Shown: piece by piece, positions 14-61,482 of the stretch | Numbering within the stretch: the first letter of the stretch is position 1 | How the letters are laid out: each line of letters opens with the position of its first letter | Assembly (NCBI GenBank): GCA_001643675.2 | Contig: LSRY02000050.1 | Coordinates: 496,001 to 560,000 of the forward strand | DNA length: 64,000 nucleotides | Direction: 5' to 3' | Source of the DNA: Monocercomonoides exilis PA203 | Taxonomy: Eukaryota; Protista; Preaxostyla | Program-made: the position numbers and the translations under genes | Notes under the pieces: model-generated | Databases searched by the model: none | The model's input: only the letters and a program-made list of their open reading frames with translations | Told to the model about the DNA's origin: nothing

Positions 14-739
14 ATGGATTATATAAAGACAACCTTTAGAGACGAACATGTGTGGTTCGATCTCAGGGGGAGGCAACCTGCAAACTTGCAGAGGATCAAA
101 GAAGAATTAGTGGCTGTCCTGAGAGAGAACGGAATACCCGACACATTTACCGCGTACTCGATAAGACACGCTGTGATAACGCACCTAGCAAGACAACAAG
201 CTGCAGATTGGAAAGCAATCAATGCGTACGCGAGATGGGCGCCAGGCTCTAGAGTAGCCCAGGAGTATTACACCGTGTTACCAGTTCAGGACACGAGATG
301 GATCCTGGAGACAATCGGTGGCCCAGTACCCCTGGCAGAGAAGGGAGGAAAGTCGGAGAAGGACAGCAAAGGAAAAGAGATTTCAAATGAGAATACAGAA
401 TCTGAAACAAAGGAGTATCCTGAAGAAACATCACAATCTGGGGGAGAAGCGGAGACGAGCAAGAGAAAGAATTCGAAGAGACGAGGGTCGACTCGAGAGA
501 AGAGTTCGCAGCATGAGGACGATATAACACAACCCACCAGGTGTGATGAGACACCTTCCATAATTCCCCGCAGCATCATGGAGCTGGCGGAGGGCAGACA
601 ACCTGCCTTGCAGAAGAAACTCGAGACCGATCGGAGGAAACGCGGAGAGAGAAGCATAGGACAAATTGTCATACCCGCTCAGGTACAGAAGACCCGATCG
701 AGAACCCCCCGAAGACAGCGCAACAAGGGGAGGGAGTAG
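14..739 (+). mobile_element. 3' end of a DIRS-type retroelement: tyrosine recombinase C-terminal part (runs off the window start)
   Basis: TAYSIRHAVIT...ARWAPGSRVAQEYY resembles the box II and catalytic Tyr region of DIRS recombinases. It parallels NTLKHASIS...ARLSPRSNTVIKHYF in the 60.3-61.5 kb element and is followed by a charged low-complexity tail. Confidence 0.75.
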
Positions 740-12669: not shown

Positions 12670-13820
12670 TAGGGTCAGCAATTTATCATATCCCCTTTTT
12701 TTTATCGGGACCTAAATTTTCTGGTTCTCAAGAGCACTTTTAGAAAAAAATAAATAATAGAAAATTATTAATATATTATAATATACTATTTCTGAAAATA
12801 TTTTTTCATATATTAATTTTTGTGAAAAGATCTGGTGTTTTTTGTTTTATTTTTAAGATCAAAGACTTGCTCGTATTTTCACGAGCTTTTTGTTTTGAGA
12901 TTTTTAAGTATTGTTATTGTTATTGAACATAACTTCTTTATAATTTTGGTTATTTTTCATTGTTTAACACTTCGTTTTTTTATTATATTTTCCATTTCAC
13001 TAAATTTCGATAAAATAAAGAATGCATTTGAATAAATAAATTTTTTCGTTAATTTTAAAGGGTAAATACATAAATTATCAATAAATAAAGATATGCAAAA
13101 GGATGAAAATCTTCAATTTTTAATGATCGAGATTATTATTCAAAAAAACATGTTTTTGTGTATTTTTGTGTTTTTAACTTCAAATCATATTTTTTCATTT
13201 CAAAATTTCGGTGATACACATATTAATCAGTTTTTTAACTATTCTTCAATGAACAAAAACATGGTAACTCTTATTTCACAATTTATTTTAAATTTGGGGC
13301 AAAATTTATTCATTTATGAAAAAAACCATGTTTTGTTCCAAACATATTCACCAACCTTATCATGATAATATTTTCATTTCTATGTCAAAAAAATATAGAA
13401 AAATTCCAAAATTGAGAAAAATTTTTGTTTGAGCGGAATGGAACAAAAATCAAAAAGCAAAATATTTCGACCCATTTTATCTAAATTTAGTGAAATGGAA
13501 AATATAATAAAAAAACGAAGTGTTAAACAATGAAAAATAACCAAAATTATAAAGAAGTTATGTTCAATAACAATAACAATACTTAAAAATCTCAAAACAA
13601 AAAGCTCGTGAAAATACGAGCAAGTCTTTGATCTTAAAAATAAAACAAAAAACACCAGATCTTTTCACAAAAATTAATATATGAAAAAATATTTTCAGAA
13701 ATAGTATATTATAATATATTAATAATTTTCTTTTATTTATTTTTTTCTAAAAGTGCTCTTGAGAACCAGAAAATTTTGGTCCCGATTTATTTTTTGGGGA
13801 CAGATAAATTTCTGACCCTA
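12670..13820. mobile_element. Foldback/MITE-like non-autonomous element, 1151 bp, with ~347-bp TIRs
   Basis: 12670-13016 is the near-exact reverse complement of 13474-13820, with termini TAGGGTCAG...CTGACCCTA. The identical ORF text at 12835(+) and 13655(-) is a by-product. The spacer is AT-rich and non-coding. Confidence 0.9.
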
Positions 13821-35389: not shown

Positions 35390-36250
35390 AAACAAACTCA
35401 CTCCATATTGAGGTTTTGATTTTCGCAATGCTCTCCACAAGCTCTCTTCAGAATAAATATACTCACCTGTAACAGGATCAACTTAATTTCTATTATGGCA
35501 GAATGTTTTATGAATGCAATCCTAATGATCCAAAGTGGAGTGTGCTTTTCATTCATTGCTCATAATTGTTGTTCCTCTCCGAATTGTTTCAGAAATGGAG
35601 GGAAGAGGTGTTTTCCTTTTTCTGAAAAAAAAAACAATATTCACAAAATGATTGCCATTTCCCCTTTCCTCCAACCTCTCAACCACCTCATCAGTCCAAA
35701 TTTGGACATTTCTTCTTCCATTCAAATATTTTCGTCTCTGCCACACAGCCTCGTCAATATCAACCACTTTTCATTCTCCTCTAATTTGATTTAGATGAAA
35801 ATTTCAAATATTTATTCATGAAACTCTGATGATACCGAATAAAAATCTCACTATTGTCCTTTCAATTCCCAATATTCTCAATGTGAACAAAACATTTGTT
35901 CCTTTCGAAAACATCTCAACAAATCTTTTGACTTTCCTCAATCTCAATTTGTTCCAAGAAAATACTGTTTCAACATGCACAATATTCTTTCTAAATCTTT
36001 TTGAACAGCACCAATATCGAAAAAATATTTCCACTTTCAGTACATTTGTTTTTCTTCTGAGAAACAATATTGAAACCTCTTATCCTTCTGATTCCAAATA
36101 TATCAAAGTCAACAAATTTTCTGTTGGGCTTTCAATCCAGAAAAAGTTTGAAATTGTTAAAACTTGTGTGAAGTTGATTCCATATCGCCTCTTTGTGAAG
36201 TTTATCACCAGATATGTTAAAAAATGTGCTTCATCGCATCTGACGTAATG
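35390..36250 (-). mobile_element. Merlin / IS1595 (IS1016)-family transposase relic
   Basis: Across stops and frameshifts it reads RYWCC..., FSWNKLRL, QIRGE*KVVDIDEAVWQRRKYLNGRR...W...VER, ETIRRGTTIMSNE*KAHSTL, FCHNRN*VDPVTGE and ESLWRALRK. This is colinear with the Merlin core VEIDES..KRKY.RGR / GT.I.SD.W.AY / VNH..FVDP.TG.HT..IE..W. Confidence 0.8.
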
Positions 36251-40870: not shown

Positions 40871-42307
40871 CTAAACTCCACTGCTTTGATCCTTTGATTG
40901 ATAAAGCAGCTCGCTCTGTGCCTCCTCTGGCTCGTGCTCAACATTCATCATTTTGTGCCTTTTCCTCACCAACAGCACAACCACCACGACTGTCACTGCT
41001 GCCACAACCAGCACAAACCCCGAAGCTGACGCTGCAATGATTATTATCAGCCTTCTCCTTCTTCTCCCTTCTCTTTCTTTCTCTTCTGATGACTGCCCAT
41101 CGTCCCGCCACTCAGGCAGCTCCACGCTGAATTCCGCTGTCACATCTGTCCCAACCCCGTTGTCCTTCCCCGATGGATACTCAATCTGGAAAGACACATT
41201 TTGCGCCCCACCGAACTCTCTGCTTTTCACATCCAGCGTCATTTTTTTTCTGTCGAACATGTCTGGACGCTCGATCGTCACAACTGTCTTTTCTGTTGCG
41301 CCCTTCACCGTGAAGCCCATCAGAATTCTGCTTCTGCACGGACCAAACCCATAGCCCTCCACCTCAAATCGCAGAAGCTCGTATTTCTGTGCCCAGCTCC
41401 ATGAAACATTCGAGATATTCACGTGGAAATACACATATTTCCCACCGTTTTCGTTCTTCTCCATTTTGCAGTCGCCAATGTCCATCCACAAATCATCCAT
41501 CACATCGTTTCCGTTCAGCGTCTTTATGGCAGAAATGCTCAACGTCCCTTCGCTCTCGCAACGCACTGTCCTGCGCAGATCGGAATAGCCCAAATAAGTC
41601 CATGTGTCAAACGTGTCGTTCCCCAGCCCCAACCACCCGCCCCTCTGCAATATGAACCCACGCACCCCATTCCGAAACGTTGTGTTTTCCATATTCGCTT
41701 TGCACTCGCTCAGTTCAATGCAGCCACTGTTCCATGCACACGCAACTTTTTCTTCATACGAATATTCGTGCGAATAATTTCGTTGATCCTCGACATTGCA
41801 ATTCTTAACAGTAATGCTCGAACTTTTCAAGATCATAAACGGATCCAGTTTTGCGGGATCAGCCGAGCCATCCGAATTTGCCCGCAAATCGATATTCTCG
41901 AGCAGCACCGCGCATTTCTCATCTGCGCTCAGAAACGGGATTGTTCCGTCTTCGTACGCCTTTGTGTTGAAGTTTAGCGACCTCAGCGTGAAGTCTGTCG
42001 AAACAATTTTGAAAAACGGAAACGGCTTGGCGTAATTGGGATAAATCAGCGTGGATCCAGCCCCTGCCTTCGATTGCATCTCGATGCTTCGGCCCTTCAG
42101 CTCAACCGAAGGGTGGCCAAACGCTTCTGAGGGAATAAGAAAATACAATTTATTCGGAGCTGGATGCTGCTTCGAAGCGTATTTCCATGTCAAGCACGGA
42201 TGCTCCATTTCCCCGCAATTTTCACTATCTTCCCCTTGCCCTGAAATATAAATTGTCAGTTCTTCCCCGCGCAGATTTCCCAGAAGCAGAATGATTCGCA
42301 AGAGCAT
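40871..42307 (-). CDS. Type I single-pass membrane surface protein of the Cys/Gly-rich family, apparently complete (478 aa)
   Basis: N-terminal hydrophobic signal-like segment (LLRIILLLGNLRG), the DSENCGEMEHPC motif, and a TM helix LIIIIAASASGFVLVVAAVTVVVVVLLV followed by RKRHK and a short tail. Confidence 0.8.
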   Translation of the reverse strand: MLLRIILLLGNLRGEELTIYISGQGEDSENCGEMEHPCLTWKYASKQHPAPNKLYFLIPSEAFGHPSVELKGRSIEMQSKAGAGSTLIYPNYAKPFPFFKIVSTDFTLRSLNFNTKAYEDGTIPFLSADEKCAVLLENIDLRANSDGSADPAKLDPFMILKSSSITVKNCNVEDQRNYSHEYSYEEKVACAWNSGCIELSECKANMENTTFRNGVRGFILQRGGWLGLGNDTFDTWTYLGYSDLRRTVRCESEGTLSISAIKTLNGNDVMDDLWMDIGDCKMEKNENGGKYVYFHVNISNVSWSWAQKYELLRFEVEGYGFGPCRSRILMGFTVKGATEKTVVTIERPDMFDRKKMTLDVKSREFGGAQNVSFQIEYPSGKDNGVGTDVTAEFSVELPEWRDDGQSSEEKEREGRRRRRLIIIIAASASGFVLVVAAVTVVVVVLLVRKRHKMMNVEHEPEEAQSELLYQSKDQSSGV

Positions 42308-44120: not shown

Positions 44121-44174
44121 AGCCAATATGAAACATGGGGAATATGTGGATAGAAGGCTCCACACACTGCAAGC

Positions 44175-47100
44175 GGCATAGGTTCAAACGCGTTCCTTTT
44201 GCAATTTGCGTTTTTAAACCATCAGATTATAACGAATTAATAGATAATAATTATTAAAAAACTTTTTATGGACCGATTTTTCGAAAAAAATTTTTCTTGT
44301 TGAAAAAAATGATTTTTGTAAAATGACCCATAAAAACATGAATTTCATCGAAAAATATTCAAATTGAAAAGAAAATGTGATTTTTACACATCAAAAGTGT
44401 TTGCATTATTATATAGACTTATTTAATTTATTAATTTTCATCATTAACAATAATGATCATAAAAAATTTTTTTTATTAAATATCTTTGATCTGACCCACA
44501 ATAAAATTTTTTATGTCTGGAAAAGTTGAATATGCTGTTATTGTTTAATTAGAACTCAAAAATGTGTGACTCGTTCACTTTTATATTTAATTATTTTATT
44601 ATTGTTATTTTAGTGAATGTTGAATGTGAAAAATACTTTTATTCTTTAGTCAAGTTAACTTGTATACATGCACTTTATTATTCAGAAGCAACAAATGACA
44701 CATTTCACAAAAGATGAAAATGGTTGGTAAACGGTTAGTCGAAATTCTGAATGAATAAAAAATGCATATTTATATAAAAACTTTGAAAAACTTACATATT
44801 CTTTCATTTTTTTTCCTTATAATTTTGAATTAGACCTAACAAATGCAATGAAACAGGAAATTTAATGGTTTAATAAATCGTAAAGGTCTTAAAATCAATT
44901 TGAGTTGAGAATAATTGAGAATTTGTATATAATGAGTGAATTTTTTTATTCATTTTTTTTTTATATTCATAAAATGTCTCAAATTTTTATAGAAAAGTTG
45001 TTAATAAAAACAATGAAAAGAAAGTTTTGGTTTTTTTGTATTTTTAATTTTGAAACTGCTTTTGACATAATTCTTATCATGTCTTCTTCAAAAATACTTA
45101 AATCATTTCATTCTCAAAATCGGAAATACAACATAAAACAAAAATGAATAAGATATTCATATTCATGCAGCTCTATCAAAACAATTGAAAGCAATAACAA
45201 CATGGAATTTGCAATAAAAAGATTTGTTAATTGCAGTATCTGCAAAGTGAAGAAGTCTCAATAAATAATTTGAAATGTTTTCTGTTTCAATTCTTTTTCA
45301 TTCTCCACTCATTGTTATTCCACTTTCTAGCGAATTCGATGTTGTTGTATCTTTCATCAAAACTAAACTCTTCACAACATCCACAAGAGATCCATCCCAT
45401 TTGCACATCTCCTGTTCTTCATTCAAATGATATTCATTTCTCTCATTTGCACTTCCATCAAACACGCATGATCCAATCCTCACATCCAAGCATTCACAAA
45501 ACTCCATTATTCTTCCCTTCTTTTTTGTGCTCCGACATTTCACAAAGGAACAGCTCAGAACACTCAATCCCCTTTCAGCTCCATCCATCTTCATCATACT
45601 TCATTCAATAGCCACTGAAATATTCTCAAACTTCACTTCCTTCATCTCTGCCTTCGCTTTCTCCCCAACTCTCACTGTTTCCCCCTCACACTCGATATTC
45701 AATATTCGTGTCTCAGCAATTGACACACAAGATTCTCCACAGAACGACAGAAATAGCACAGCTGAATGAATTCCACTGAACAACGTTTCGCTCATCTTTA
45801 GCTCTCCACTCTCTGCATCAAGAATCATGCACTTCATCACCAGATCCATTGTTGACGAGCTGAAAAGACACTCTGAAATCTCCAATCTTCCATCCTTCTC
45901 TTTCAAAACACTCTCCTCAACCCCTTCAAATCCCTCTCCAAACACAAACTGGCACCTCTCCACAACACACTCATTCACAAACACCATCACACGCCTCTCC
46001 TCTCCTCTTCCCTCCATCCTCCCGCAAAAATGGATTGTCGCCTTCTCTCTCCGAATCGGCACCATCCTCACATCCCCAATCACACATCCCTCTCCCATCA
46101 TCCCTTCCCCATCAATAAAAATCATATTTACAACACTTCGTTCGATGTGCTGCACAGCATTTCCAACGCTCTCACACGGATTGCTCTGTGCTCCACACTG
46201 CCTGCTGTCACTCCCATTCACACACACAAACACCTGTGAAGAATAATAGAATGTGATCAGTGAAATCAGATCAACGTCAACTTTCCCTTCTCCATCGCTC
46301 CCACACATCGACTTCTCCCCCTTCAGCGCCTCCTGGCTGAAGTCCAGTCCAAAAAGTCTTTCATTCAGCTGCAACTCAATCAAATCACACCGGATGAAAA
46401 CATCCTTCCCCACAAATGCATCATTCATCATGAATCGGATGCTCTCCAATCTCAGCCCAAGTGGTGGCATTTCCGTGTTGGAGCATTCCACATTCGGATC
46501 AAGCGCATCAATCATCATCCCTCCTCCCCTTCCATTCCCTGTCGAGCACACACACATCCCAAATGAACACCCACTCACTTTCACCTCCGACTCTCCTCTC
46601 TTCATCAGCATCTTCATCCCTCCGCCTTCTGTGCTCCTCTCGCTCATGCACTTCGTCAGCACACACCCTTCAATCACACATTCCATCCCATTCAAGAATG
46701 ATCCCACACTCATCACACATGCCCTGTTCTCTAAACATGTGATGTTTGCAAATGAGGAGCTGTTCACCCTCACTCTTTGTTTTGTGTTTTCTCTTGCTTT
46801 GTTGATCAACATGCTTGGCAGCAATGGCTGACTCAGCGATATCAGACTCCTTCCTGAGATTATTGTGCTCGAAGCAGACACATTCATCACATCAATCACT
46901 TCCACTTCTGGTGCAAACTCTAAAACCCCTTTGGCCAGATTGAATTGAGAAAGGGTGCAATCCTCAATCACCACACTCCCTCCATCTGCGATTACCAATG
47001 AATATTTCGTTTCCTTTGTTGAATCCTCACAAACAAATGAGCACCTCACAACTGAAAGTGTTGCAGAGGAGGATGATAATGATTGGATGAGTGATGAATG

Positions 47101-49544
47101 TCTCCCCAATTCATTTGGCAAAGAAAATGAAATATTGGTGAATGAAAGACAAATATTCGATGTTATCATCGACTTTCCAATATCCTCAGCATCCATTTCT
47201 CTCACTTTCAGAACTGTTCCTTTCTCTCTCCCCTCAATTGATGCAATAAAAGTTATTGATAATGATGATGATTGCAAAGATATTGATTTTTGAAGCAATC
47301 CTGATTCAACAATGCTGATAGAGGTTTCCCCTTCCTCAAGTATCGAATATCTCAGTGATATCAAGTGCTCAATCGATGAACATGGTGCTTCAGAAAACCC
47401 ACATCCTCTGAAGTCTCCTCCTTCTTTTCCCGAAACAAACCCATTCCCACTCCAGTTGTTCCACAAATACACAACCAATGGAATCACATATCCCTCCTCT
47501 CCTGTCATCTTCCTCTCCCATCCACACAACTTATCCAACGATCCCAACTCCAGTGGACTCATCTCCCATTTTAAATAATCCTCATTCACAATCTCACTCA
47601 GATCCCATCCAGAAACAAACATGTTCTTCCCTTTCCAAGCATTGCATCCCTCAAATGTCATGTTCTCCAATGAAAATGTTCCCATTTGATCGGCAAGTTC
47701 AGCAAACATCCCTCCTCCCATTCCTCTCCCTCCATTCTCAACATCCTCTGATGGCACAGCACATTCTGACAAATTCACTCCACTCACTCTCAATGTTCCT
47801 CCATTTCCCACTGATATCATCATCCCTCCCCCTTTCATTCCACTTCCACCTGAGCAGATTGAGGATATATTGCTTTCTTCAATATTCACAATCCCATTCA
47901 CACCCATCTCAACATTCAAACATCCTCCTCCTCCTCCACTCCCACCAACAACTTCCACTCCACTCATTCGGCTGTGATTCATCTCCAATTCAACACCATT
48001 CGAAACAACAATTGGCGATTTCCCACTCATTCTCACTCCCCTTTCCATCACAAATCCATGAACAATTAGCCCTCCTCCTTCAATACAAATCACATTGTAT
48101 CCAATCATTTCCTCGTCCACTTCATTTATCCTCAATCCTTGTTCAGATTTCTTGATTGATAAAATACATCCTCCACTTTCATTCAACGATTCCACTCGAA
48201 CATTTAAGAAATGGCAAGTAATTCCAGAATCATGAATGACAAAAATACTGTTTCCAACATTGCATGATTCCATCGACAGATCATTCACTTCCACATTGCC
48301 TCCAATCGCATCCACAAACACACAATCAAATCCATTGTTCACTTCTGCTTCTGAATGGAGCGAACATTTACTTATCACCAAATCTCCATTTCTGTTTGAA
48401 ATAATTGTTTTGGCTGAATTGTCAAATCCTATTGTTAGTTGAAGTTGGATGTTGGACAATTCAAGATGGTCATCATTTTCCATGAAATATTCCAAATGAT
48501 TTCCAACTGCCTTTTCAAAATTCAATATTGCTTTTGTATCTTCTTCTCCCATCTTTACACCCTTTTTGATCTGATAATTGGACATGTTGAATGAATCTCG
48601 AATAACAGTCGATCCATCAATCTGAATTGTTTTCATTCCACTTTCCTTTTCCATGTTTTCCATCCATTTCTACATCGTTTGGCATGGTTCTTCCTCGCTT
48701 CTACATATTACAACATCTAATTCACTGTTAGAGTAAAATAAATCAAATTCAAACAATTATTTTTTTTTTATGGTAAAAAAAACCAAACTTTTATTTAGTA
48801 TATGTTTTTATTTCTCAATATTGAGCTATTTTGTGTAAGTAATGTTTTATTTTGCAACATTGATTTATTTAAGCATGCTATGATCGAGCCTAATACAAAA
48901 AAATATTAATATACCAAAAAACAAGAAAAAATTCGTAGGAAAATAGCTAAATAAATATTTGTTTGATGAAAAAAACTATATAAAACCTTTTGCGTTCCAT
49001 TGCCACTTTTTTTGAAATTTTAATCTTTCAGCTTAACAACATGGAAGTGAAAATGCATGTGTTTGTGTCACTGATAATAAAAGTATTTTTCACATTCAAC
49101 ATTCACTAAAATAACAATAATAAAATAATTAAATATAAAAGTGAACGAGTCACACATTTTTGAGTTCTAATTAAACAATAACAGCATATTCAACTTTTCC
49201 AGACATAAAAAATTTTATTGTGGGTCAGATCAAAGATATTTAATAAAAAAAATTTTTTATGATCATTATTGTTAATGATGAAAATTAATAAATTAAATAA
49301 GTCTATATAATAATGCAAACACTTTTGATGTGTAAAAATCACATTTTCTTTTCAATTTGAATATTTTTCGATGAAATTCATGTTTTTATGGGTCATTTTA
49401 CAAAAATCATTTTTTTCAACAAGAAAAATTTTTTTCGAAAAATCGGTCCATAAAAAGTTTTTTAATAATTATTATCTATTAATTCGTTATAATCTGATGG
49501 TTTAAAAACGCAAATTGCAAAAGGAACGCGTTTGAACCTATGCC
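44175..49544. mobile_element. Non-autonomous cargo-carrying DNA transposon copy 1 (Merlin-like), 5370 bp
   Basis: TIRs at 44175-44643 and 49076-49544 (469 bp, GGCATAGG...CCTATGCC). 8-bp TSD CTGCAAGC at 44167-44174 and 49545-49552. Confidence 0.93.
45298..48712 (-). pseudogene. Cargo of copy 1: internal fragment of a Cys/Gly-rich beta-helix-like surface protein gene (1020-aa open stretch)
   Basis: ORF 45601-48663 continues past a TGA into 45298-45597 and upstream past a TAG to DVVICRSEEEPC. Repeated CGxxxxPC and GGGM motifs; no signal peptide or TM segment. Confidence 0.85.
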
Positions 49545-50899
49545 CTGCAAGCAACATCAGCAGCAATATTATCCTTTCTCTTCTCGGAAACAAGCACAAG
49601 CACAAGCACCAACGTGAATGCAGCAGTCACCAAGGCTACCCCATGCATGCCAGGGAGCATTGATAAACACTGGGTTCTTCACACACGAAGATGGAATTGA
49701 CAATTATTACTTAATTTCATCTAATCCTCTTCTATTTTTTCTTCCTCTTCCTCTTCTTCTTTTGCCTTCTTTCTCTTCTCTTCTTCTTCTGCCTTCTTTC
49801 TATTCTCTTCTTCTTCTTCTTCTTCTCCGCCTCCTCCTCCTCCCCCTCTTCTTCTTCCTTCTCCTCCTCGTCGTCTTCTCATTCTTCTTTTTCTTCTTTT
49901 TCTTCTTCAAAAGATAATAATGCTCTTCGAATACTTCATTTTCGTCTCCTTTTCATTATAGAATTATCGAACAAAAAAAAGTCATTTAAAAAACTAATTT
50001 GCTTCTTCAACACACTCATTGCAATTTTTCCTTCTCTCTGCATTTCTTTCAATGGAAACACCACCGCCTCCCGCTTCGCATCCATCGATCTCTTCTTCTT
50101 CTAATGCCTCTCTTACTCAAACACTCCACTCACGCTCCAATCTGGCCTTTCCTTCTTCTCTCTTTCGTCCACACCGTCTGAAAAAGAAGCTTCTCGTACA
50201 TCTGAAAGCAGATTCCTGCCATCTTTCAGCTGAGTGCTGAGAATATGGAAGCATTGATTATCATTTTTCATTGTATTGTGCTTCTAAAGAAATTTCCACA
50301 TCTAGCGCTGTCACAATAGAGAAGAGAGCAATGTTCATGCTTTTGGAAGCAGCATCAGCTCGTTTGATAACCTCATCTTGTTGAATTCTGCAGGAACGGC
50401 GTGTACAATTTTGAAGATAGCGCTGCTTGAAGGCGAAAAAAGGAACATGCCCATCGGGAGAGAAATGGTTAGAACAAAAGAAGAGATAGGTGGAATTATG
50501 ATTATTGACTGAAGAAAGGAAAATCATTTTCATTTAGAAAAAATATGAGATGTCACATTAAAAATTCGCATGTTTATTTCTAATAAGAAATGAAAATGAT
50601 CTGAAAAAAGATTTTTTCACAATATCACAATTCTTACAAACAGTTCTTTTCTCAATTGACAAGCTCTGACGTTTTTCCCCAACTGCTTTGCAATCTCTTG
50701 AAAATAATCGATTTCCAAAAAATTCGCTGAACAGAAATTGAATTGGTCCATTTAAAAATGTTGAGAATATATTGAAGATATCACTTTCTCTGAAAATATT
50801 GAGAAAGAATTATTTGTAACGTCATCAATCATGCGTTTATCCATTTTATTTTTTCAAAAGTTGATAAATACGACAACGAAGAATAATAAGCTCTTTTCT

Positions 50900-51280
50900 C
50901 TATGACCGAACAAGTTTATCAAGTTTCTCGATGCAGTAAATCAGTCGAAAATATCAATAGTTGAACACTGTATTGAATATTCTGCGAAATGCATTATTTT
51001 CAATACTTAAACATGAAAATAGACTCCGTTCACTGGCTGAAAAGAACTCGTGCAATTCGCATCATCATCATCGGCATGTCCCTCCTTTGCTTCACAAATA
51101 TTGTTATTTGCGAACTGCACAATTATTATTATTCTCCAATGAATTCCTTCGTATTTGATGTTCATTTTTTCATGATAATGAATATCTTCTTTGAAACAAA
51201 ACAATTTTTCAAAATTAATACTTTCTAGTAAGTCAAATATCTTTTCACCATTGCTTGCAGCTTTGAGCACTTCATTTAAT
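50900..51280 (-). mobile_element. Possible very decayed pogo-like transposase fragment
   Basis: AASNGEK and ANCTSSFQPVNGVYF weakly resemble the DDE_1 motifs AxGxKL and PNxTSxLQPLD. Confidence 0.3.
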
Positions 51281-52001
51281 TTTCAGAGCATGAATGAATT
51301 TGAAATTTCCACGATTATCTAATCAATGCTCAAAATATCTCCATTTATCGAATCCGAGAAACCAATATTTTGTTTTGCATTAAGAATTGACAAGTGACTT
51401 GACAGTGACGAAAGTTTCAAATTTTTGGAAAGTGACAAAAGATCTGAAAAAGTGACGATCAAAAAAATCATTAACTGACTTGATCAAAATTCTTATTTAA
51501 AATTTAAAATTGAGATCCAAGTTTGGATAAAAAACTGTTTTTTTCAAATTTTTAATAAATATTTTTTCAAAATGACAACAAAATTTAATTTTCTGTATGG
51601 ACAAGCCAGCAGAAAAAAAAGAACTTTCGATTAAATCAAACAGTGACAAGAAAAATTTCAATTCGTTAGTCACTAAAGTGAAAAAAGCTCGTCACTGGCA
51701 GGGTGACGAGGAGGTTTAAAAAAAAACCATTGTTTTGCTTTATTTTCATTTTTCACTTCATGTTATCAAAAAATAAATGAAAAAGGTTATTCATGAATTT
51801 CTGCAAAAGGCAAAAATGCAAATCACAAAATCGAAAATGAAGAAAATATTGTGATAACTGATTTCAATGAAAACTGAAAAAAATAATTGAACTGAAAATT
51901 GTTTTCTGATTGAATCTTAATGTTAGCATTTTGTTTTACAAGAAAACATTCATTCACTTTCTTCCCTTCGATCTGAGAGTATCACAAAAGGGTCAGTCAC
52001 G

Positions 52002-55000
52002 GGCATAGGACTAAATGCGCTCCTTTTGTAAATTGCGTTTTTAGGCATTAAAATTATGATGAATAAATAGGTAATAATTTTTAAAAAACTTTTTATGGAC
52101 CGATTTTTCGAAAAAAATTTTTCTTGTTGAAAAAAATGATATTTGAAAAATGACCCATAAAAACATGAATTTCATTAAATGATATTCAAATAATAAAGAA
52201 AACGTGATTTTTTCGAAACAAAAGTGTTTGCATTATTATATAGACATATTTTAATTGTTAATTTTCATCATTAACAATAATGATCATAAAAAATTTTTAA
52301 TTAAATATCTTTGATCTAACCCACAATAAATTTATAAATATATGCATAAGTTGAATATGTTGATTTTAGAAAAAATCGAACTCAATAGTTTGCCATAATT
52401 TCATTTTTATATATAAAATAAAAGCATATTGTTATATGCGCACTTGTTTTGTGTTGAAAACATCTTTTATTCACAGTTGCATTAAAGTGTGCCTTTTTGC
52501 TTGAATATTCTAAACTACCTAATATTAGTTCATTTTCGTTCGCAAAGGAACGCAAAAGGTTATATATAACTCTTTAAATAACTATATTATTTATTTTGCT
52601 TTAATATTTCATATATTTTCTTGTTCTTTTATATTTCTATGTTTTTTTTGAATTAGATGAGATCATTGCATTATTAAATGAAACTTTTTACTCAGATAAA
52701 CTTCAATTTCCCAATGCAATATTATATTGAGTTATTAAAACAATGAACAGAATAAAAGTTTGTCATTTGCAAGTTTTTAAAAAAATACGAAAAAATGAGT
52801 TGATTTAACTTTTTTTGTAGATTTGATGTTGTTTATTGCAGAAGTGAAGAAGAACCATGCTTAACATTGTGGAAAGGGATGGGAAACATAAAAGAAGGAA
52901 ATGAAACGAAAACAATTCAAAGAAAAGGATCAACTATTATTCAAGATACTTTCAACATGTCCAATTATCAGATCAAAAAAAGTGTAAAGATGGGAGAAGA
53001 GAACACGAAAGCAATATTGAATTTTGAAAAGGCAGTTGGAAGTCAACTGGAATATTTCATGGTGAATGAAATTCATCTTGAATTATCAAACATTCAACTT
53101 CAACGAAAATCGGGATTCGACAATTCAGCCAAAACCATTATTTCGAATATAAATGGAGATCTGGCGATATCTGGATGTTCATTCCATTCAGAAGCAGAAA
53201 TGAACAATGGATTTGATTGTGTGCTTGTGGATGCGATTGGAGGAAGCGTAGAAGTGAATGATTTGTCAATTGAATCATGCAATGTTGGAAACAGCGTTTT
53301 TGCAATTAACAATGCTGGAGTTTCTTGCCATTTTGTGAATGTTCGAGTGAAATTGTTGGATGAAAGCGGAGGATGTCTTCTTCTGATCAAATGATCTGAA
53401 CCAGGATTGAAGATTAATGAAGGAGAACTGATTGTTGATAAATTTGTGATTGAGGGTGGAGTGACGCTGACGATGAACGGTAAATCACCAATAACAATAA
53501 CCAATGGAGAGAAGTTGGACATAAAGAAAGGCAGAGTGAGTGGAGTGACGGTGGAAGGTGGGAGTGGAGAAGGAGGATGCATCGGTGCAGAGATACAAGC
53601 AGAAGGAAGCGCAATTGTGGATAACTGCAGCATTTCAACAACATGCACAGGTGGAGGTGGGATGAAAGGAGGAGGGATGATGATTTCAGCTGAGAACGGA
53701 GGAAGTTTGGAGATTAAAAGCGTAACGTTCACAGGATGCCAGGTGCCAGCAGAGGACAACTTGCAGAAAGGAAGAGGAATGGGAGGAGGGATGTTTGTTC
53801 GATTGGCAGATACAATGGAATCATTTGTGCTTGAAGGAGTGACATTCAGCAGGTGCAATGCTTGGAAAGGGAAGAAAGTGTTCATATCGGGAAATGAGCT
53901 GGACGAGGTTATGTCGAACGAACAACTGAAATGGTGGTTGAGCTCAAGTGATGAGAAGTCATTGGATGAGCTGTGTGGATGGGAGAGAGCAAGCACAGAT
54001 GAGGGATATGTGATTCCATTGGTTGTGTATTTGTGGAGGAACTGGAGCAAAGATGGGTTTGTATCGAATGAAAAAGGAGGAGACTTCAGTGGGTGTGGCT
54101 TTTCTGAAGCACCGTGTTCATCGATCAATCACCTGATATCACTGAGATATTCGACACTTGGAAAAGGCGAATCCCAGATCAGCATTGGGGATTCAGGGTT
54201 GCTGAGCCATTCGATATCATTCTTGTCTTCGTTGCCATCTTTGCCAGATTCAGATTCACCAAAAGTTGTGATAAAAGGAACAAAGAAAGGAACAAGCGTG
54301 ACAATTACTGATGAAGACGAAAATGATTTGGATGATGGTTCAATGATATCATCAAATGTGAGTCCGTCATTTGTGAATGTGTCATTCATAAAGCCTAACA
54401 TCACTTCTCATCAAGCAATATTCATTGAATCGTCAGGAACAAACACATTATTGTCTGTTTCAGATTGTTCATTTGGGTCAGCTGGCGGGACGGTTGAAAG
54501 TTTTGCATATTGCGTGATAAAAGTGAACGGAGGGAGCGCAGCAGTTCAGAGTTGCACTTTGAATAAGATCAACGAATTGAAAGGATTCATTGCTTTCAGT
54601 GCAACAGCAACAAGGGAGGTGATTGTGGAGGATGTGAACATCTCGAATGTTGGGGTGAAGGAGAGAAGTCTGAAATCGATGTTTGAGGATGAACAGATGA
54701 ATGGGATGAAAGCCAAAAAAGTGATAAATGGAGGGGGAAAATGGGAATTCAAACAACGAAAAAGTGGTGATAAAAGTGAATGGCTCTTCGTTTTCATACA
54801 TCACAAATGGAGAAAACAGAGCAGGGGTGTAGAGTGTGGATTCATTTGCGAGGGCAATGAAGTGTGTGTTGGAGGGGTGTTCGGTCTCGAGTTGCAGGAG
54901 TGAAATGAGCGAGGAAGAAGGAGGGATGAAAGTGTGTCTGAAGAGAGGAGAATCAAAAGTGAGAGTTGTTGGGTGTTCGCTGGGGATGTGTTCGTGCTCT

Positions 55001-57454
55001 AGTGTGAAGGTGAGAGGAGGAGGGATGATGGTTGAAGCACTTGACCCGAATGAGGGTGGAACCAGTGCACTTGGGCCTGTTGGGATAAAGATGGAGAATG
55101 TGAGGTTTTTGGGGAACGAGGCGTTTGTGGAGAAGGATGTGTTCATCAAGTGCCACTCGATTGGGAAACAGATCAATAAAACGATGTTTGTGCTGGACTT
55201 CGAGCAGGATGCACTGAAGGGGAAGAACTCGATGTGTGGGAGCGATGGAGAAGGGAAAGTTGATGTTGATTTGATTCCGCTGATCACATTCTTTCACTCA
55301 GCTCAGGTGTTTGTGAGTGTAAATGAAAACGATAGCAGACAGTGTGGAGCACAGAATTATCCGTGCCAGAGCATAAGTTGTGGTTTTAAACATATTGAGA
55401 GAAGCGTAGCAAATATGATTTTAATTCATGGAGAATGCATGATTTGTGGATGGTGTGAGATAGGAGATTTGAATGTGAAGTCGGTGAAGAAGGCAAAATC
55501 CACAATCCATTTTGAGGGGAAGATGGGGGACAGAGGAGAGGAGAGGAGCATGATGGTGTTTGTGAATGAGTGTGTTGTGGAGAGGTGCAAGTTTGTGTTT
55601 GGAGAGGCATTTGAAGGGGTTGAAGAGAGTGTGGGAAAAGATCTCATCAGTAGTCGTGAAAATGATGTCGAGGTGAGCGAGTTAAATTTATTTAGGAATG
55701 AAGAATTTCCTTCTTCAGCACAGCCATTTGTTATGAAGAATACAAGTGAAACAAAGGGAAATGGAAATGAAATAATGTCAAAAGGAGAGGATAAATTTGA
55801 ATGGAGTTTATTTGCCTTTATTGAATGTATTGTGATTGGTGTGATTCTATTAGTTGTGATTGTTGCGGTGTTTGTGCTAATGAGAAAGAAATTAAGGGAA
55901 GCAGAAAAGAGAGTTGAGAAAGAAAGATTTGAAAACGAGCAGATAATGGGAAAGATAGAGAGAAGAAGAAGGAAGAAAAATTTGAGAATATCTCAGTGTA
56001 TATTGAAGCAAGCTTGATGAAGATGGATGGAGCTGAAAGAAGGTTGAGTGTGCTGAACTGCTCTTTTGCGAAATGTCGGAGTACAAACAAGAAAGGAAGA
56101 ACGATGAGGATATGTGAGTGTGTAGATGTGAGAGTTGGATTGTGTGTTATTGATGGAGAGGAAGGAGATGAAAAAGAAGGAAAGCATGGGAATGAGGATA
56201 ATGGAAGAGGGAAAGAGATCTTCAGATGAGATGGATCTCTTGTGGATGTCGTGTAAAGTTCTGTTTTGATGAAAGGCACAACAATCTCGAATTCATCAGA
56301 AGGTGGAATAACAATGAGTGGAGAAAATATGTAGATAAAAGTCATAAACGTTTAACATTATTTACTGAGACTTTTTCACTTTATTGCAACAATAATTTAG
56401 CAATTTTCTTATTGTTCTCATAAAATTGGAAATGTTTTTGTTTGTGTAAAGGAAATACATCTTTATTTGTATCTTTGCAATTATTGTTTGATGTTTATAA
56501 AACAATTTTAAGAATGAAATGAATATATTATTTGTGAAAAAGATATGATCTTTATAATTTCTAAAGCAGTTTCAATATTTTTCAATCAATTATTTATTCA
56601 CTTTGCTTGCAAATTATAATTATTCTACAACAAATTTTTATCATCATCCGTTACACTAGGATCAAGAAAACAAAGAACAAATTCAAAAATGACTTTTCAA
56701 TGAATGAAATATAAACATTTCTAAACGATTGATCAATTAAAAACTTCTTTGCTGAAACATACTGTAATAATTCCTTTCTTTTTGTTTTAATCATGCAGAG
56801 TTCAAAAATGAAAGATAAAATAATGTAAGTATATGTCAGTTTTTCAAAGTTTCAATTAAATTGAACAATTTTTATCCAGTCAGAGTATAAACAAAACTTT
56901 TTCAATACATTGCCATCTTTATTGAAATGTATCTCCAGTTGCATCTTAAAAATAAAGCGTATATCAATAAGTTTTCTGGACATAAGAATGAAAGCATTAT
57001 TTACCATTGAACATTCACAAGCGTAATTTCATATAAATAAACAAACACGAAAGTGTTCGATTTACTAATGTTTAGGTTCTATTTAAACCAAAATTACATA
57101 TTCAACTTATGCATATATTTATAAATTTATTGTGGGTTAGATCAAAGATATTTAATTAAAAATTTTTTATGATCATTATTGTTAATGATGAAAATTAACA
57201 ATTAAAATATGTCTATATAATAATGCAAACACTTTTGTTTCGAAAAAATCACGTTTTCTTTATTATTTGAATATCATTTAATGAAATTCATGTTTTTATG
57301 GGTCATTTTTCAAATATCATTTTTTTCAACAAGAAAAATTTTTTTCGAAAAATCGGTCCATAAAAAGTTTTTTAAAAATTATTACCTATTTATTCATCAT
57401 AATTTTAATGCCTAAAAACGCAATTTACAAAAGGAGCGCATTTAGTCCTATGCC
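52002..57454. mobile_element. Non-autonomous cargo-carrying DNA transposon copy 2 (Merlin-like), 5453 bp, opposite orientation to copy 1
   Basis: TIRs at 52002-52360 and 57096-57454 (359 bp, GGCATAGG...CCTATGCC). 8-bp TSD CAGTCACG at 51994-52001 and 57455-57462. Confidence 0.93.
52822..56330 (+). pseudogene. Cargo of copy 2: paralogous surface-protein fragment with a stop, frameshifts and a swapped-in TM segment
   Basis: ORFs 52867-53394, 53407-54903, 54836-56017 and 55996-56229 are colinear with the copy-1 cargo (FNMSNYQIKK, GYVIPLVVYLW.NWS, KNSMCGSDGEGKVDVDLI, MKMDGAER). Confidence 0.85.
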
Positions 57455-57483
57455 CAGTCACGTAGAATCTGAAAAAAAATAGA

Positions 57484-60400
57484 ATGTTCCCAAGCTTTCC
57501 ATTCAGCACCGGATCCGTGTTGAATTCTGCCACATCAATGATGTCAGATGGACTTTCGGGAGAGATATTTTCAAGTGTGATTTCTCATTCCAGTTCTGAA
57601 TTTTCCCAACAGATCCCGGGAGCTTCAGAAGCAAAAGAAAGCCATGGCGAGGATAGTTTGCTGCTAGAAAAAAGTTTTAAAACAATATTTCTTAGAGATC
57701 CAGATTGCAGCTTATATGATATGGACTTACCTGAAAGATATTTGGAAGATCTTATTATTGACCTGAAGGAAGATGATTTAAGTCCATTTCTGCCAAAGGC
57801 TCCTCCTACAGCTTCGAGAACAGATAATTGGATGAATGACTCATTGGATAAGGCAGGCGAGCACACTGAAGCATATCTATATCCAGCCATTAAAATTCTA
57901 TTTTTCACACATGCGAAATTAAAAGAAAAAAATGACGAAAAAGGGTCAATTGCAGATGCAATTTTATAAGTTTCAAAAGCTCTGAAGGAAGCAAGATCTG
58001 TAAGAATTCAAGGAAGATTCGGCTTTAGGGCAGCTGCACAGATGCAGGAGAGCTCATCTGCCAGTCTTCTTACTCAAAGGCAATCAGAAGTTCTGGAAGA
58101 ATGGAGAAAAACAGAAAAGAATCAACAATTCAAGCTGCAAACAACGAGCTGGCCTATGACAAGAAGTTCGTTAAGAGCCAGAACAATTCCAACCAGAAGA
58201 TCAGTAAGCCACAGATTTTTTCAAGCAGCTCCCCGGTTGTCAAGACAACAAAACCAAATCCGACTGCGACCAAGAGCTTCAGGCTTCACGAAAAGAAAAC
58301 GATCAGGGGAGCGAAAATTCCAGTAAAAGAAAGAACAGCATCCAACAGCCCGCAGAAGTCCAACAAGAGGAGATGGTTGGAGGAAGAACTTGTTTATTTC
58401 GAGAAGAATGTGAAAAAAATAGGAGGAGCACGCATTATTGGGAAAGGAGGAATCCCTGTTTGGAGGAGCAAAGCTGCGAAGGAATCACTCAAGAAAACAG
58501 GAGTATTCAACCCTTTGGAGCATCAGAGTCAAGAAGCCCAACAAGCCTTTTCAGAGATGATAAAGAAGCAACTAGAAACAAATATCATCAAGCCGATTCA
58601 GGAGAAGGATGTGAAGCATTTGAATCCAGTGTTTGTAATCAGAAAGAAAGACGGTGGCTGGAGGCAAATCGTGGATTATCGTAGACTGAACAATGCAATC
58701 AAGGCAATACATTGCAAGCAAGAAGATCTCAGAACAGTGGAGAAAATTAAACAAGAAAAGGATTACGCAGTCACGCTGGACTTGAGCCAAGCAAACTATC
58801 TTATAAAAGTCAGCGAAGAATTATCTCCATTCCTTTCGTTCGTTTCCAAAGGAATTCACTTCGCTTTCCACGGAATGCCTTTCGGTTACAAAGATGCTCC
58901 TCGAACGTTCACAAAAGTGATGAGAAAAGTTCAAAAATATATGAGGGAGGAATGGAACGCGAGAGCCATTGCATACCTGGACGATATTGTTCTTTTTCAT
59001 CCAGACCCGCAGGAACTCAATATTATAGTGGAGAAAACTCTTTCGATGTTCAACAAATGGGGACTATTGGTCAATTCAGAAAAATGTCATTTAATTCCAA
59101 GTCAGCAGTTCAAATTTTTGGGCTTCCAATGGGATACCATTCAGTTTGTGGTACAGATAGAGGAATCGAAGAAAACAGAGCTGATGAAAGAGTGCAAGAA
59201 ATGGAGGAGGATTGCCCAGTTCAACAGAGTTGTTTCGACAAAAAAGTTTGCCTCGTTGATAGGGAAACTGAATGTGAATGCATCGATAACAAAATGCCTC
59301 GGGAAGTGGAGCGAAAGGCTGAAAGAGAACCAACCAAGGAAATTGAATCCAGTATTTCGACCAGAAGCAATTCTGACAACAGATGCATCAGGGTTTGCCA
59401 TAGGCGCAACACTGTGAGTCAACAATCAAATGCTGGACTTTTTCAAACCTCTTCCACCTCCAGTCAGAAACCAAAGTTCAAATTACAGAGAGTTATTTGC
59501 GATAAATCAAGCCATCGCGCATTTCTCAAATTCCATTCGAAATCAAGAAATAAGAAATCTGCTTATTCGATCAGACAACACAACAGCAGTTTGCAATTTG
59601 AATCGATGGGGAGCGGGTCCGAATCTCAGAACCTTTCTGAAGAAAATATGGAATCAAACCCAAGCGCTGAAAGTGGTTGTGAAAGCTCAACATATTCCTG
59701 GAGAGAGAAACGTCAGAGCATATGGCCTATCGAGATTGGCAAAAGGAGGAGATTACGAAGTCGAACAAAAAGCACTCCAAGAGATTACCAATCAGCTTCA
59801 GATGCACATCACACTCGATTCTGTCGCAACAAAAGAAAACACAAAATCAACAAGATGGTGCGGACCAGGAAGCAATCTGAGTCAAGACGGGTTACAAATT
59901 TCTTGGAGAAACGAGACAGTTCTTGCGCATCCACCAGTTCCTTTGATTCCAGCAGTGATCCGAAAAGCAGCGATGGAGAAAGCTCGAGTTCTTCTTCTTC
60001 CCGATTGGAAGGGTCAGATATGGGAACCTCTTCTGAACAACACAAATCACATCTCTTGGACATGGAGGAGAACGGAGGAGATAATAAGGGAAGGAAGATG
60101 GACAAAGCAAATGAATGCAACGCTTCTTCTTGGAAGACTGAGGATATGCGTAATCAATCCATAACCGAAAATGGAGAATCGTGGTGGAACGAGATTTTAG
60201 CATCAAGAAGCATGTCACGTGAACTGGCTGAAGAGTGCAAAAACAGTGTCGCAAGTGCCACATGGATGGGATACACTGATGGTTTCGCGCATTTCAAAGA
60301 CGGATGGGATCGGTTGAAATTCAAAGACATCCCTTCAAAATTTCAGATTTGGCAAAAAAGATGCTTGGATGTGTTTGTCGCCTTGAAAAACAACGAAATG

Positions 60401-61482
60401 AAAGCTTCTTCATTGAAAATCGTCAGATCTGCCATTTCCTTCCTAACATCAGAATTATACGGAAAATCACTTTGGGAGAACACATTGATCTCAATTCTGT
60501 TCTGATCATTCAGGAGATCGGAATGCAGAAAGAAAAAGAACAAGAAGATATGTGGAATCCTCAACAACTCTTCACATATATTGAAACGATTGGAAAGAAC
60601 GAAAATATGTCATTCGCACAGCTAACGAGAAAAACAGTTTGTTTGTGTATGTTGTTCTCTGCGTGCCGCTTTACAGAATTTGAAAGAATCAATCTTAAGG
60701 AATCAGAAATAGATAAGCAATCAATAAACCTGAATGCTTCACTAAAAACTGGACTTGATAGAAGCAACATTGTCATCCCATTCCTCAGCAAGGAAAGTTT
60801 GATATGTCCAACAACAGCCGTTAAAGATTTATGTGATCGAGTGAAAATTCACAATCCAACTGCCAAAAAACTTTTTCTGAGCTCTTCAACATATGATCCA
60901 ATGAAGGCCCGAGCAATTCGAAAAGTGGCCAGCGAAATGATGAAAGATGCAAGAGTCTTTTCGAACAACAGCCCAAACACATTGAAACACGCCTCGATAT
61001 CAGCCTTTGTAATGGAGGGAACACCAGTTGAACAGGTGGCAAAATTTGCAAGATTATCTCCCAGAAGCAACACAGTGATTAAACATTATTTCAAATCCAA
61101 CATATCAAACAAGATGTCACAGATAATTTCATCGAATCAGGAGACAAAGGAAGCAATTCAACAGCCTTCCACGGTTCCTCCATCTGCATCGACACAAGAC
61201 GAAAAAGATTCCATCATTACCATCAATCAACAATCACGTTTGCCAGAAGGCCATGAAACAGTGAAAGCAAGAGAAGAGATCTCACAACCAGACCGTATCG
61301 AAGAACCAGATGATGATAAGTCTCAATCCATCCACGAAAAGCAAGAAAATACCACGAACAATGTTAACGAGAAAAACGAAAACGAAATCATAGAAGAAAA
61401 ATGCATCCAGTTTATTATTCGAACAAGATCACAGAGAAGAAAAGAAATGGTGGAAAGAGACAATTCGGAAAGAAATCCATAA
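57484..61482 (+). mobile_element. DIRS-type tyrosine-recombinase retrotransposon (gag-like, RT, RNase H, methyltransferase-like, YR), degenerate
   Basis: RT: NPVFVIRKKDGGWRQIVDYRRLN, GMPFGYKDAPRTF, AYLDD, FLGF. RNase H: TTDAS, NYREL, RSDNTTAV, HIPGERN. Methyltransferase-like: W....LAHPPVPLI. YR: SACRFTE...LKHASIS...KHYF. ORFs overlap and carry frameshifts and stops. Confidence 0.9.

Follow-up and report, generated by a model that had tools for sequence, protein, structure and literature searches.

A stretch of 64,000 nucleotides from the genome of Monocercomonoides exilis PA203, a protist without mitochondria (hereafter the window), contains two long insertions, W1 (44175-49544; 5,370 bp) and W2 (52002-57454; 5,453 bp), which raise the question of what kind of element they represent, how such an element could move and what the surface-receptor sequence in their interiors amounts to. 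The first-pass annotation had taken them for Merlin-like transposons of a protist, mobilized in trans, that carry a host surface-protein gene instead of a transposase and amplify and disperse its family, or serve it as a silent cassette reservoir. The structural side of this description, including the protist host, held in full. The TIRs are 469 bp each in W1 and 359 bp each in W2, and mutually complementary at 100%; the sizes are those given above; and the two insertions are flanked by different perfect 8-bp TSDs (Table 1). Both elements open with GGCATAGG, their TIRs are ~88% alike across ~297 bp, and their interiors, which are oppositely oriented, are homologous at 73-74% nucleotide identity. 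When the entire window was scanned for the combination of GG..CC termini, a 14-bp inverted match and an 8-bp TSD, W1 and W2 alone were returned, and a search with the transposase of the lineage described below gave no match inside either.

Paralogous unoccupied sites with one target copy were detected in the assembly, four for W1 and one for W2, with 2-3 mismatches in 38 bases; in some of the W1 paralogues one or two mismatches fall inside the 8-mer itself. Short-read coverage of W1, divided into 30 bins, was taken from three DNA runs: the contigs of two runs cover every bin, those of the third 28. All three runs also contain a joint skipping W1, which at first suggested excision or an empty allele; it is not counted as activity because the paralogous empty sites explain it equally well. 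RNA contigs cover a 0.07 share of W1 in short, partly mismatched pieces, which fits transcripts of paralogues. The W2 target site adjoins the upstream side of DIRS-like retroelement ORFs.

Table 1. Features of W1 and W2 (positions in the window)
Feature	Positions	Strand	Basis or remark
W1 TSD, left, CTGCAAGC	44167-44174	.	8 bp
W1 TIR, short-arm end, 469 bp	44175-44643	+	100% complementary to 49076-49544
W1 short-arm-specific segment, ~570 bp	44644-45212	.	present in ~20 one-armed sister loci
W1 cargo, main part, internal ectodomain fragment	45269-48112	-	85.5% nt to C20 host gene
W1 conversion-tract core, approximate	46030-46630	-	150-nt windows; tree
W1 cargo, 5' part, second receptor subfamily	48113-48730	-	150 scored matches
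W1 TIR, cargo-arm end, 469 bp	49076-49544	-	complementarity to left TIR
W1 TSD, right, CTGCAAGC	49545-49552	.	8 bp
W2 TSD, left, CAGTCACG	51994-52001	.	8 bp; unoccupied paralogue
W2 TIR, cargo-arm end, 359 bp	52002-52360	+	complementarity
W2 cargo, two-donor receptor fragment as in W1	52830-56331	+	frames and homology
Insert in W2 cargo from third receptor gene	55641-55965	+	identity to C16 element arms
W2 short-arm-specific segment with transposase-leader remnant	56417-57095	.	score versus shuffles
W2 TIR, short-arm end, 359 bp	57096-57454	-	complementarity
W2 TSD, right, CAGTCACG	57455-57462	.	8 bp; unoccupied paralogue

These two copies do not stand alone: about 50 M. exilis elements of 1.7-20 kb are bounded by ends of the same type, and the annotation's view of a multi-copy non-autonomous family is thereby upheld. 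The end motif had 150 matches (reversed control, 0), and pairing inverted matches by hand, as had been suggested, gave 53 elements, of which 26, roughly half, were read whole or nearly whole. GGCATAGG stands at both ends of all 22 fully read non-autonomous copies, and a matching 8-bp TSD flanks 16 of the 22 (W1, W2 and 14 of the 20 others), being absent in 6. The one-armed copies, which include W1 and W2, measure 3.5-5.6 kb. They agree in their 3' junction, at position 4385/6386 of element A (described below), and most agree in their 5' start as well; at least 14 of them, at different sites, have common junctions, i.e. they were amplified as a unit.

The same ends also enclose transposases, in support of the Merlin/IS1595 assignment. 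A related IS1595/Merlin transposase match lies within 13 of the 53 pairs, all 13 at least 7.8 kb long. The TSD-flanked element A (C13:173742-184510) has 4,418-bp arms that are 99.9% identical, and a 475-aa ORF in which D..D..E is intact and which matches DDE_Tnp_IS1595 at 77 bits (cut-off 27). Element B, with an 8-bp TSD and different cargo, has 2.7-kb arms that are 96.6% identical and a PF12762 match of 75 bits (cut-off 27); the catalytic motifs are present in both, and each of their inverted arms contains cargo. Element C (on C20) has 848-bp TIRs and differing cargo on its two sides; the right arm has matches in each arm of B. In the copy closest to W2 a stop splits the transposase after the catalytic core. 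Six transposases of the lineage form one clade in our tree, apart from the 1.4-1.5-kb Merlins; their identity to the remaining Merlins in the sample is 25-36%, and a homologue search outside the M. exilis genome gave one distant match (38%). The transposase-bearing copies read here also hold cargo, so that cargo does not stand in place of a transposase, as had been claimed.

The cargo is of receptor-family origin, as the annotation had recognized, but instead of a gene it is a chimeric internal fragment interrupted by stops. Its source is the ~2,700-aa beta-helix/TM/kinase-like receptors of M. exilis, which constitute the organism's largest gene family (PMC6759080). Inspection of a host gene of this family shows a hydrophobic stretch at the N-terminus and a TM, and the gene also matches PK_Tyr_Ser-Thr. 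The main part of the W1 cargo corresponds to residues ~1137-2093 of a 2,715-aa receptor; it is 85.5% identical over 2,890 nt to a host gene on C20 (intact 2,715-aa ORF), versus 74.7% to the autonomous element's cargo. The 5' part has 150 scored matches at 72-85% amino acid identity, mostly in long host ORFs. An in-frame TAG (48670-48672), common to the autonomous copy on C13, lies just upstream of a 1,020-codon open frame (45601-48663). The W2 cargo is split into frames 52867-53394, 53407-54903 and 54836-56017, with at least 4 stops; its 325-bp insert encodes a transmembrane segment, recurs at 96% identity in each arm of the transposase-bearing element C16:1369301-1379912, and is private to these two, being absent from every other locus fetched. 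Every whole cargo has at least 2 stops in its host-aligned part. Signal peptide, native TM and kinase tail are absent from the cargo, W1 being ectodomain only and W2 having a foreign TM insert, but broken. Pfam gave no significant match for either cargo. Single-sequence folding reached a pLDDT of 35, and a model from a 71-row alignment 84; in the latter the W1 main cargo is predicted to form a parallel beta-helix. The model informs the fold only and no function, because Foldseek gave no significant match and VIA-align ranked many beta-helix proteins level, the best at Z 12.5 with an rmsd of 4.0 over 182 residues. Most likely, the cargo is a passenger pseudogene fragment rather than a functional product.

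A trace of the missing transposase persists in the short arms. In W1 the inner portion (~44935-45194), though decayed, is homologous to and collinear with the 5' leader of the transposase, and the homology, AT-rich and weak (~70%), breaks close to the start codon. Its score is reached by 2 of 300 composition-matched shuffles; that of W2 is 103 against a shuffled mean of 48, and 0 of 300 reach it. A collinear remnant, with scores reached by at most 3 of 300 shuffles, was found in 12 of 13 one-armed copies and fails in one. This supports W1 and W2 as putative deletion derivatives that lost the transposase and retain its leader.

Two patterns recur in the sequences of the lineage. Firstly, median TIR identity is 1.00 within elements and 0.88 between them, and in the TIR tree the left and right ends of the same copy pair together, indicating homogenization of the TIR pair in each copy. 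Secondly, the proposed phylogeny of cargos and host family members, run as quick ML trees on query-anchored alignments of 120 of at least 224 host proteins, rejected cargo monophyly in three segments (p-AU 1.9e-6, 1.5e-4 and 1.4e-3). The cargos are mosaics of paralogues located on different contigs. In W1 a tract, whose limits are estimates from 150-nt windows, agrees with the host gene on C20 at 95-99% identity, in a region where the cargo of the autonomous copy is 70-79% identical. Given this near-identical tract and the rejected monophyly, host paralogues appear to keep overwriting the cargo, host-to-element being the only direction with evidence. Some of the patchiness may be due to extinct or unsampled mosaic donors, since the host genes are mosaics too.

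We therefore favor, with a probability of about 0.8, a reading of W1 and W2 as non-autonomous cut-and-paste Merlin elements of a cargo-laden lineage with a history in five steps. An ancestral Merlin would have gained, beside one TIR, part of the interior of a host gene of receptor-kinase-like type, giving the order TIR-cargo-transposase-TIR. The one-armed copies would then have arisen when the body of the transposase was deleted close to the start codon, a step that the leader remnant supports. These copies would be moved in trans by transposase from relatives of 8-11 kb that share their ends, generating the observed 8-bp TSDs; transposase activity and trans-mobilization are what the shared ends point to. 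Break repair within an element could copy one arm onto the other, keeping the TIRs identical and, in some transposase-bearing copies, lengthening them to arms of 2.7-4.4 kb, with the cargo present twice. Finally, ectopic gene conversion or templated gap repair would overwrite the cargo with paralogue tracts, because it is homologous to hundreds of host genes.

Exchange might also run the other way: the mobile cargo would be a silent source of donor sequence, carrying ectodomain tracts between receptor clusters of separate chromosomes and diversifying the surface repertoire. The drawing of cargo mosaics from different contigs, the open frame retained in W1 and recombination among the host genes themselves are congenial to this; cargos also tend to be more mosaic (rank correlation 0.12-0.35 versus a host median of 0.46), but the host values (mean between-window correlation) span 0.07-0.69 and so include those of the cargos. 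Against it, the element-specific junction of two subfamilies occurs in 0 of 120 host proteins examined, full-length cargo matches lie inside elements only in the genome search, no supported nesting of a host gene within a cargo-only clade was seen, and the stops and frameshifts of the cargo would harm a recipient gene. Internal cargo tracts bear no direction marker at the protein level. We consider this two-way exchange unlikely; of the silent-reservoir idea, exchange with host genes stands, with evidence confined to the host-to-element direction. Similarly doubtful is a mobile recombination shuttle, in which a Merlin lineage with receptor-ectodomain cassettes in all its members would take up tracts in one receptor cluster, jump and pass them to other clusters, thereby diversifying the largest surface-receptor family of M. 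exilis, and its kilobase-long arms may yield family-regulating hairpin RNA.

Dispersal of whole surface-protein genes, driving expansion of the family, is very improbable and already largely refuted. The elements are indeed multi-copy and TSD-flanked, with cargo from the genome's largest gene family (PMC6759080), but the 26 elements read completely or almost completely include none with a full receptor gene, the cargo lacks the receptor parts noted above, and the ~2,700-aa host ORFs listed sit outside paired ends. The nearest host paralogues lie together on the same contigs, the pattern that local duplication would produce. A 10-kb pair on C91, examined as a carrier of a whole receptor gene, proved to be neither that nor a normal member, and is probably a mis-pairing or unrelated capture. 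We found no sign of the element feeding sequence back into host genes or spreading intact receptor genes.

Still less probable are independent captures, each copy having picked up its cargo from a different host gene with no exchange afterwards. Cargos are polyphyletic and A-, B- and C-type elements carry different receptor parts, but the common outer junctions of the one-armed copies combined with internal mosaicism contradict separate pick-up: the nearest host gene shifts along a single cargo, and W1 and A have their upstream nonsense codon in common, yet differ by 25% inside. Least probable of all, the long arms and identical TIRs could be artefacts of the Canu/Nanopolish/Pilon assembly (PMC8767320), as the near-identity of the A arms might suggest, but the B arms are 3.4% apart with indels, the A arms a frameshift apart, 8-bp TSDs bound both, the architecture repeats at similar sizes across several contigs, and DNA-run contigs (44510-44807 and 44614-45009) cross the W1 TIR-to-interior junction.

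The cargo-laden Merlin lineage favored here preserves within its own sequences clean traces of two repair processes, end identity within copies and cargo overwriting: copies diverge by ~12% while each copy's two ends stay identical. Ectopic gene conversion is therefore directly measurable in M. exilis. Such elements may also underlie part of the overlap of 'unclassified repeats' with tyrosine-kinase genes noted in the M. exilis genome paper. Flow back into host genes, if true, would constitute a transposon-based route to surface-receptor diversity; on present evidence the cargo looks like a passenger.

As to classification, the lineage has the 5'-GG TIR ends of the IS1016/IS1595-related Merlins, a DDE_Tnp_IS1595 transposase between the same ends, and TSDs of 8 bp, against the 8 or 9 bp usual in the superfamily, in W1, W2, 14 of 20 other copies, A and B. 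Its TIRs (0.24-4.4 kb) exceed the 24-462 bp stated for the superfamily (W2 fits, W1 is marginal, relatives reach 0.8-4.4 kb), which we treat as a variant rather than exclusion because that range is descriptive and TIR length is unreliable for classification (PMC3573991). The transposases found between these ends are of IS1595 type rather than of the MULE or hAT superfamilies, the rivals with 8-9-bp TSDs, no other transposase-length ORF being conspicuous in the elements read, and ends and TSDs together suggest cut-and-paste mobility catalyzed by such a transposase. Bacterial IS1595-family elements hold intact, functional passenger genes between their ends; with the same transposase family, the M. 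exilis cargo consists of broken eukaryotic fragments. Trypanosome VSG pseudogenes are silent surface-family fragments that exchange tracts by conversion in antigenic variation, whereas the M. exilis fragments reside in a mobile element, without an expression site or evidence of element-to-host flow.

No published Merlin with host cargo or kilobase TIRs, and no paper describing this lineage, was found in the literature, and we regard it as an unpublished Merlin-type lineage combining both. Seven M. exilis Merlin families, F1-F7, of ~1.4-1.5 kb with 23-29-bp TIRs, have been described (Lopes et al. 2021, PMC8101967); in the part of that source drawn on here they share the genome, 5'-GG ends, 8-bp TSD and DDE_Tnp_IS1595, but have other end sequences, none starting with GGCATAGG in the supplement alignments, and no mention of host cargo. 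The transposase-bearing members of our lineage are five to seven times larger. W1 and W2 also have the features of Pack-type elements, being non-autonomous, TIR/TSD-bounded and multi-copy with a host-gene interior from outside the elements. They resemble the Pack-MULEs of plants and Pack-TIRs of animals, whose host gene fragments are often chimeric and moved in trans, and for which gap-filling or template switching are proposed capture routes (Tan et al. 2021, PMC8277862). Pack-TIRs are mostly single-copy, and that paper does not mention Merlin; unlike in Pack-TIRs, the M. exilis cargo also occurs in transposase-bearing copies, comes from one huge family and shows continued donor exchange. TIR extension by internal recruitment and within-copy TIR homogeneity, finally, are foldback-like features, paralleling in structure only Galileo, whose long TIRs arise via recombination or conversion of internal sequence and whose copies are chimeric (Marzo et al. 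2013, PMC3573991). Galileo, however, belongs to the P superfamily and recruits its own internal DNA, while the M. exilis lineage, in which the P-type transposase is absent, has host-derived coding fragments within 2.7-4.4-kb arms around a Merlin transposase.

The two transposase-less insertions in the window, W1 and W2, each have perfect TIRs and carry different 8-bp TSDs, just as the first-pass annotation had described them. They lie in opposite orientation and their interiors are 73–74% identical. Each target site is a member of a repeated host sequence, and because unoccupied paralogues of both, found elsewhere in the assembly, have a single target copy, the TSDs can be said to have arisen on insertion. 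A joint skipping W1, present in contigs from DNA runs, can be explained by the same paralogues. W1, its TIR-to-interior junction included, is covered by short-read contigs from three DNA runs on one sample, and in RNA contigs W1 appears as short pieces only. W2 lies directly upstream of the first ORF of a DIRS-like retroelement.

Insertions, reference elements and other features (C-numbers are other contigs of the M. exilis assembly)
Feature	Location	Size	TIRs or arms	TSD	Remarks
W1	window 44175-49544		TIRs 469 bp, 100% complementary	8 bp, CTGCAAGC	
W2	window 52002-57454		TIRs 359 bp, perfect	CAGTCACG	
Element A	C13:173742-184510	10,769 bp		CGAATATT	W1-type ends
Element B	C13:361774-369988		arms 2.7 kb, 96.6% identity	AGAAAAAG	
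Element C	C20:99983-109466		TIRs 848 bp	not matching	
Second recombinase fragment	window 14-739				
MITE-like element	window 12704-13786	1.08 kb	inverted arms 313 bp, 99% complementary, starting ATCGGGACC		T runs on flanks; outside W1/W2 family
ORF	window 21885-24800 (-)	971 aa			UCH (ubiquitin hydrolase) domain, E 1e-14
Decayed transposase relic	window 35402-35779 (-)				small-type Merlin; 28% to C13 transposase; several stops
ORF, shorter surface-protein type	window 40871-42307 (-)	478 aa			similar Cys/Gly ectodomain, C-terminal TM segment; no Pfam match
DIRS-like retroelement	window 57484-61482 (+)				RVT_1 (E 2e-28), RNase H-like and tyrosine-recombinase ORFs; frameshifts
Locus with nested Merlin	C38:14713-18033	Merlin 1.4 kb			small Merlin of a different family, nested in A-type TIR

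The assignment to Merlin, proposed earlier, was confirmed by element A, a transposase-bearing reference element whose ends enclose a 475-aa ORF with a DDE_Tnp_IS1595 match (77 bits) and the catalytic triad in place. Transposases from six elements with W1/W2-type ends formed one clade with full support (quick ML), and are 25–36% identical to the other Merlins sampled. To delineate the family, we searched the M. exilis nanopore assembly (PMC8767320; 82,301,135 bases, 101 contigs) with the end motif, which gave 150 matches against 0 in the reversed control. From the matches listed, 53 elements of 1.7–20 kb were paired by hand, at least one of them wrongly; about half were read, 26 whole or nearly whole. 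An exact 8-bp TSD was seen in 16 of the 22 fully read non-autonomous copies, consistent with the multi-copy family that had been anticipated. Copies of ~1.74–2.0 kb lack cargo (the host receptor-gene fragment), those of 2.9–5.6 kb have one cargo arm, and a related transposase match lies within 13 pairs, all of at least 7.8 kb; small autonomous copies with W1/W2-type ends were absent from the hand-paired set. Near-identical copies in opposite orientation, 30–50 kb apart, occur at C1:817245-822642 and C1:847013-852408, and at C91:1434072 and C91:1485393; in each pair one TSD matches and the other does not, and local hops or end rearrangements are possible. At C91:696074-706169, B-type ends ~10 kb apart, with a left TIR of only ~175 bp, enclose unrelated host-like ORFs, representing either a mis-pairing or a large independent capture.

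The donor gene is a single receptor-like ORF of 2,715 aa, with a hydrophobic N-terminus, a Cys/Gly-rich ectodomain, a TM segment and a PK_Tyr_Ser-Thr-like tail, in that order. All named host homologues of the cargo are MONOS_ proteins of M. exilis, in whose genome the tyrosine-kinase-like genes form the largest family (PMC6759080). A parallel beta-helix is predicted for a 270-residue cargo piece, in a model of pLDDT 84 whose best match, at Z 12.5, is one of many tied beta-helix proteins. The cargo had been described as a surface-protein gene; that of W1 is instead a chimeric ectodomain fragment, comprising only donor residues ~1137–2093 behind ~200 residues of a second subfamily, and it lacks a signal peptide, a TM segment and any kinase portion. 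Its 1,020-codon frame is preceded by an in-frame stop, the W2 cargo is spread over three frames, and two or more stops occur in the host-aligned part of each complete cargo that was read. An intact receptor gene was present in 0 of the 26 elements read whole or nearly whole, and the closest host paralogues lie on the same contigs; the suggestion that the element amplifies and disperses the receptor family, as a driver of its expansion, is not supported.

The inverted repeat of element A spans 4,418 bp at 99.9% identity, with a complete cargo copy in each arm and a 1.9-kb transposase spacer between them. The cargo of element B differs, consisting of the TM and kinase-like tail from the same host family. 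Element C is asymmetric: an open 542-codon transposase frame lies between two different receptor-family fragments, one per side. The right arm of C matches each of the two B arms. The layout of C is likely to be ancestral for B-type elements; on the simplest reading, an asymmetric TIR-cargo-transposase-TIR element would become symmetric by copying one arm onto the other. Such copying is apparently also visible at small scale in the TIRs, whose median identity is 1.00 between the ends of one copy as against 0.88 between copies, and whose left and right members group by copy in the tree. A 20.4-kb near-palindrome at C16:997450-1017897 has an A-type arm and transposase on each side (99.9–100% identical where read), a nested 7.8-kb C-type element at its centre with the same nested junction on both sides, and a mismatched outer TSD; this suggests, in a reading dependent on the assembly, that the arm was copied after the nested insertion.

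In ~20 loci of one-armed copies (cargo on one side, a short-arm segment on the other), the 3' end of the cargo is joined to a 570-bp segment, which is absent from element A at BLAST level. The inner part of this segment is collinear with A's transposase 5' leader, ending near the start codon, and in 12 of 13 one-armed copies no more than 3 of 300 composition-matched shuffles reached the alignment score. W2 further has a private 325-bp TM-coding insert that recurs at 96% identity in each arm of C16:1369301-1379912, a transposase-bearing element. This leader remnant, and the insert common to W2 and the C16 element, indicate that W1 and W2 derive by deletion from cargo-bearing, predicted autonomous elements, rather than by the swap implied in the earlier description of a gene in place of a transposase.

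The W1 cargo is 85.5% identical in nucleotides to a C20 host gene versus 74.7% to the cargo of A; over ~600 nt the values are 95–99% versus 70–79%, and the nearest host paralogue shifts along each cargo. When cargo was compared with family members outside the TIRs, as had been proposed, three segments rejected its monophyly (p-AU 1.9e-6, 1.5e-4 and 1.4e-3; quick ML trees with a subset of host proteins). Because the cargo is polyphyletic, yet its copies have common outer junctions, the sequences point to one capture followed by repeated overwriting by host paralogues. Host receptor genes are also mosaic, with the cargo values falling within the host range, and hence the cargo is apparently one participant in a conversion pool that spans the family, not the subject of a special process. 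The nesting of W1 among C20 genes in the tree supports probable flow from host to element. In the reverse direction, the element's chimeric junction occurred in 0 of 120 host proteins, and the genome search gave no full-length cargo matches outside elements. Thus, of the proposed silent cassette reservoir, exchange is supported, with evidence in the host-to-element direction only.

W1 and W2 are Pack-type, foldback-like Merlins, and the striking features of their lineage are kilobase arms filled with cargo and the continuing exchange with the host receptor family. Seven Merlin families with TIRs of 23–29 bp are reported from M. exilis (PMC8101967); since these, in the supplementary alignments of that report, are ~1.5-kb elements with ends unlike the W1/W2 type, the present lineage lies outside them and, as judged from its ends and predicted transposases, is a distinct Merlin. 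In Galileo the TIRs were lengthened by recruitment of internal sequence (PMC3573991), and a like extension from internal sequence is what we propose for the arms of the W1/W2 lineage.
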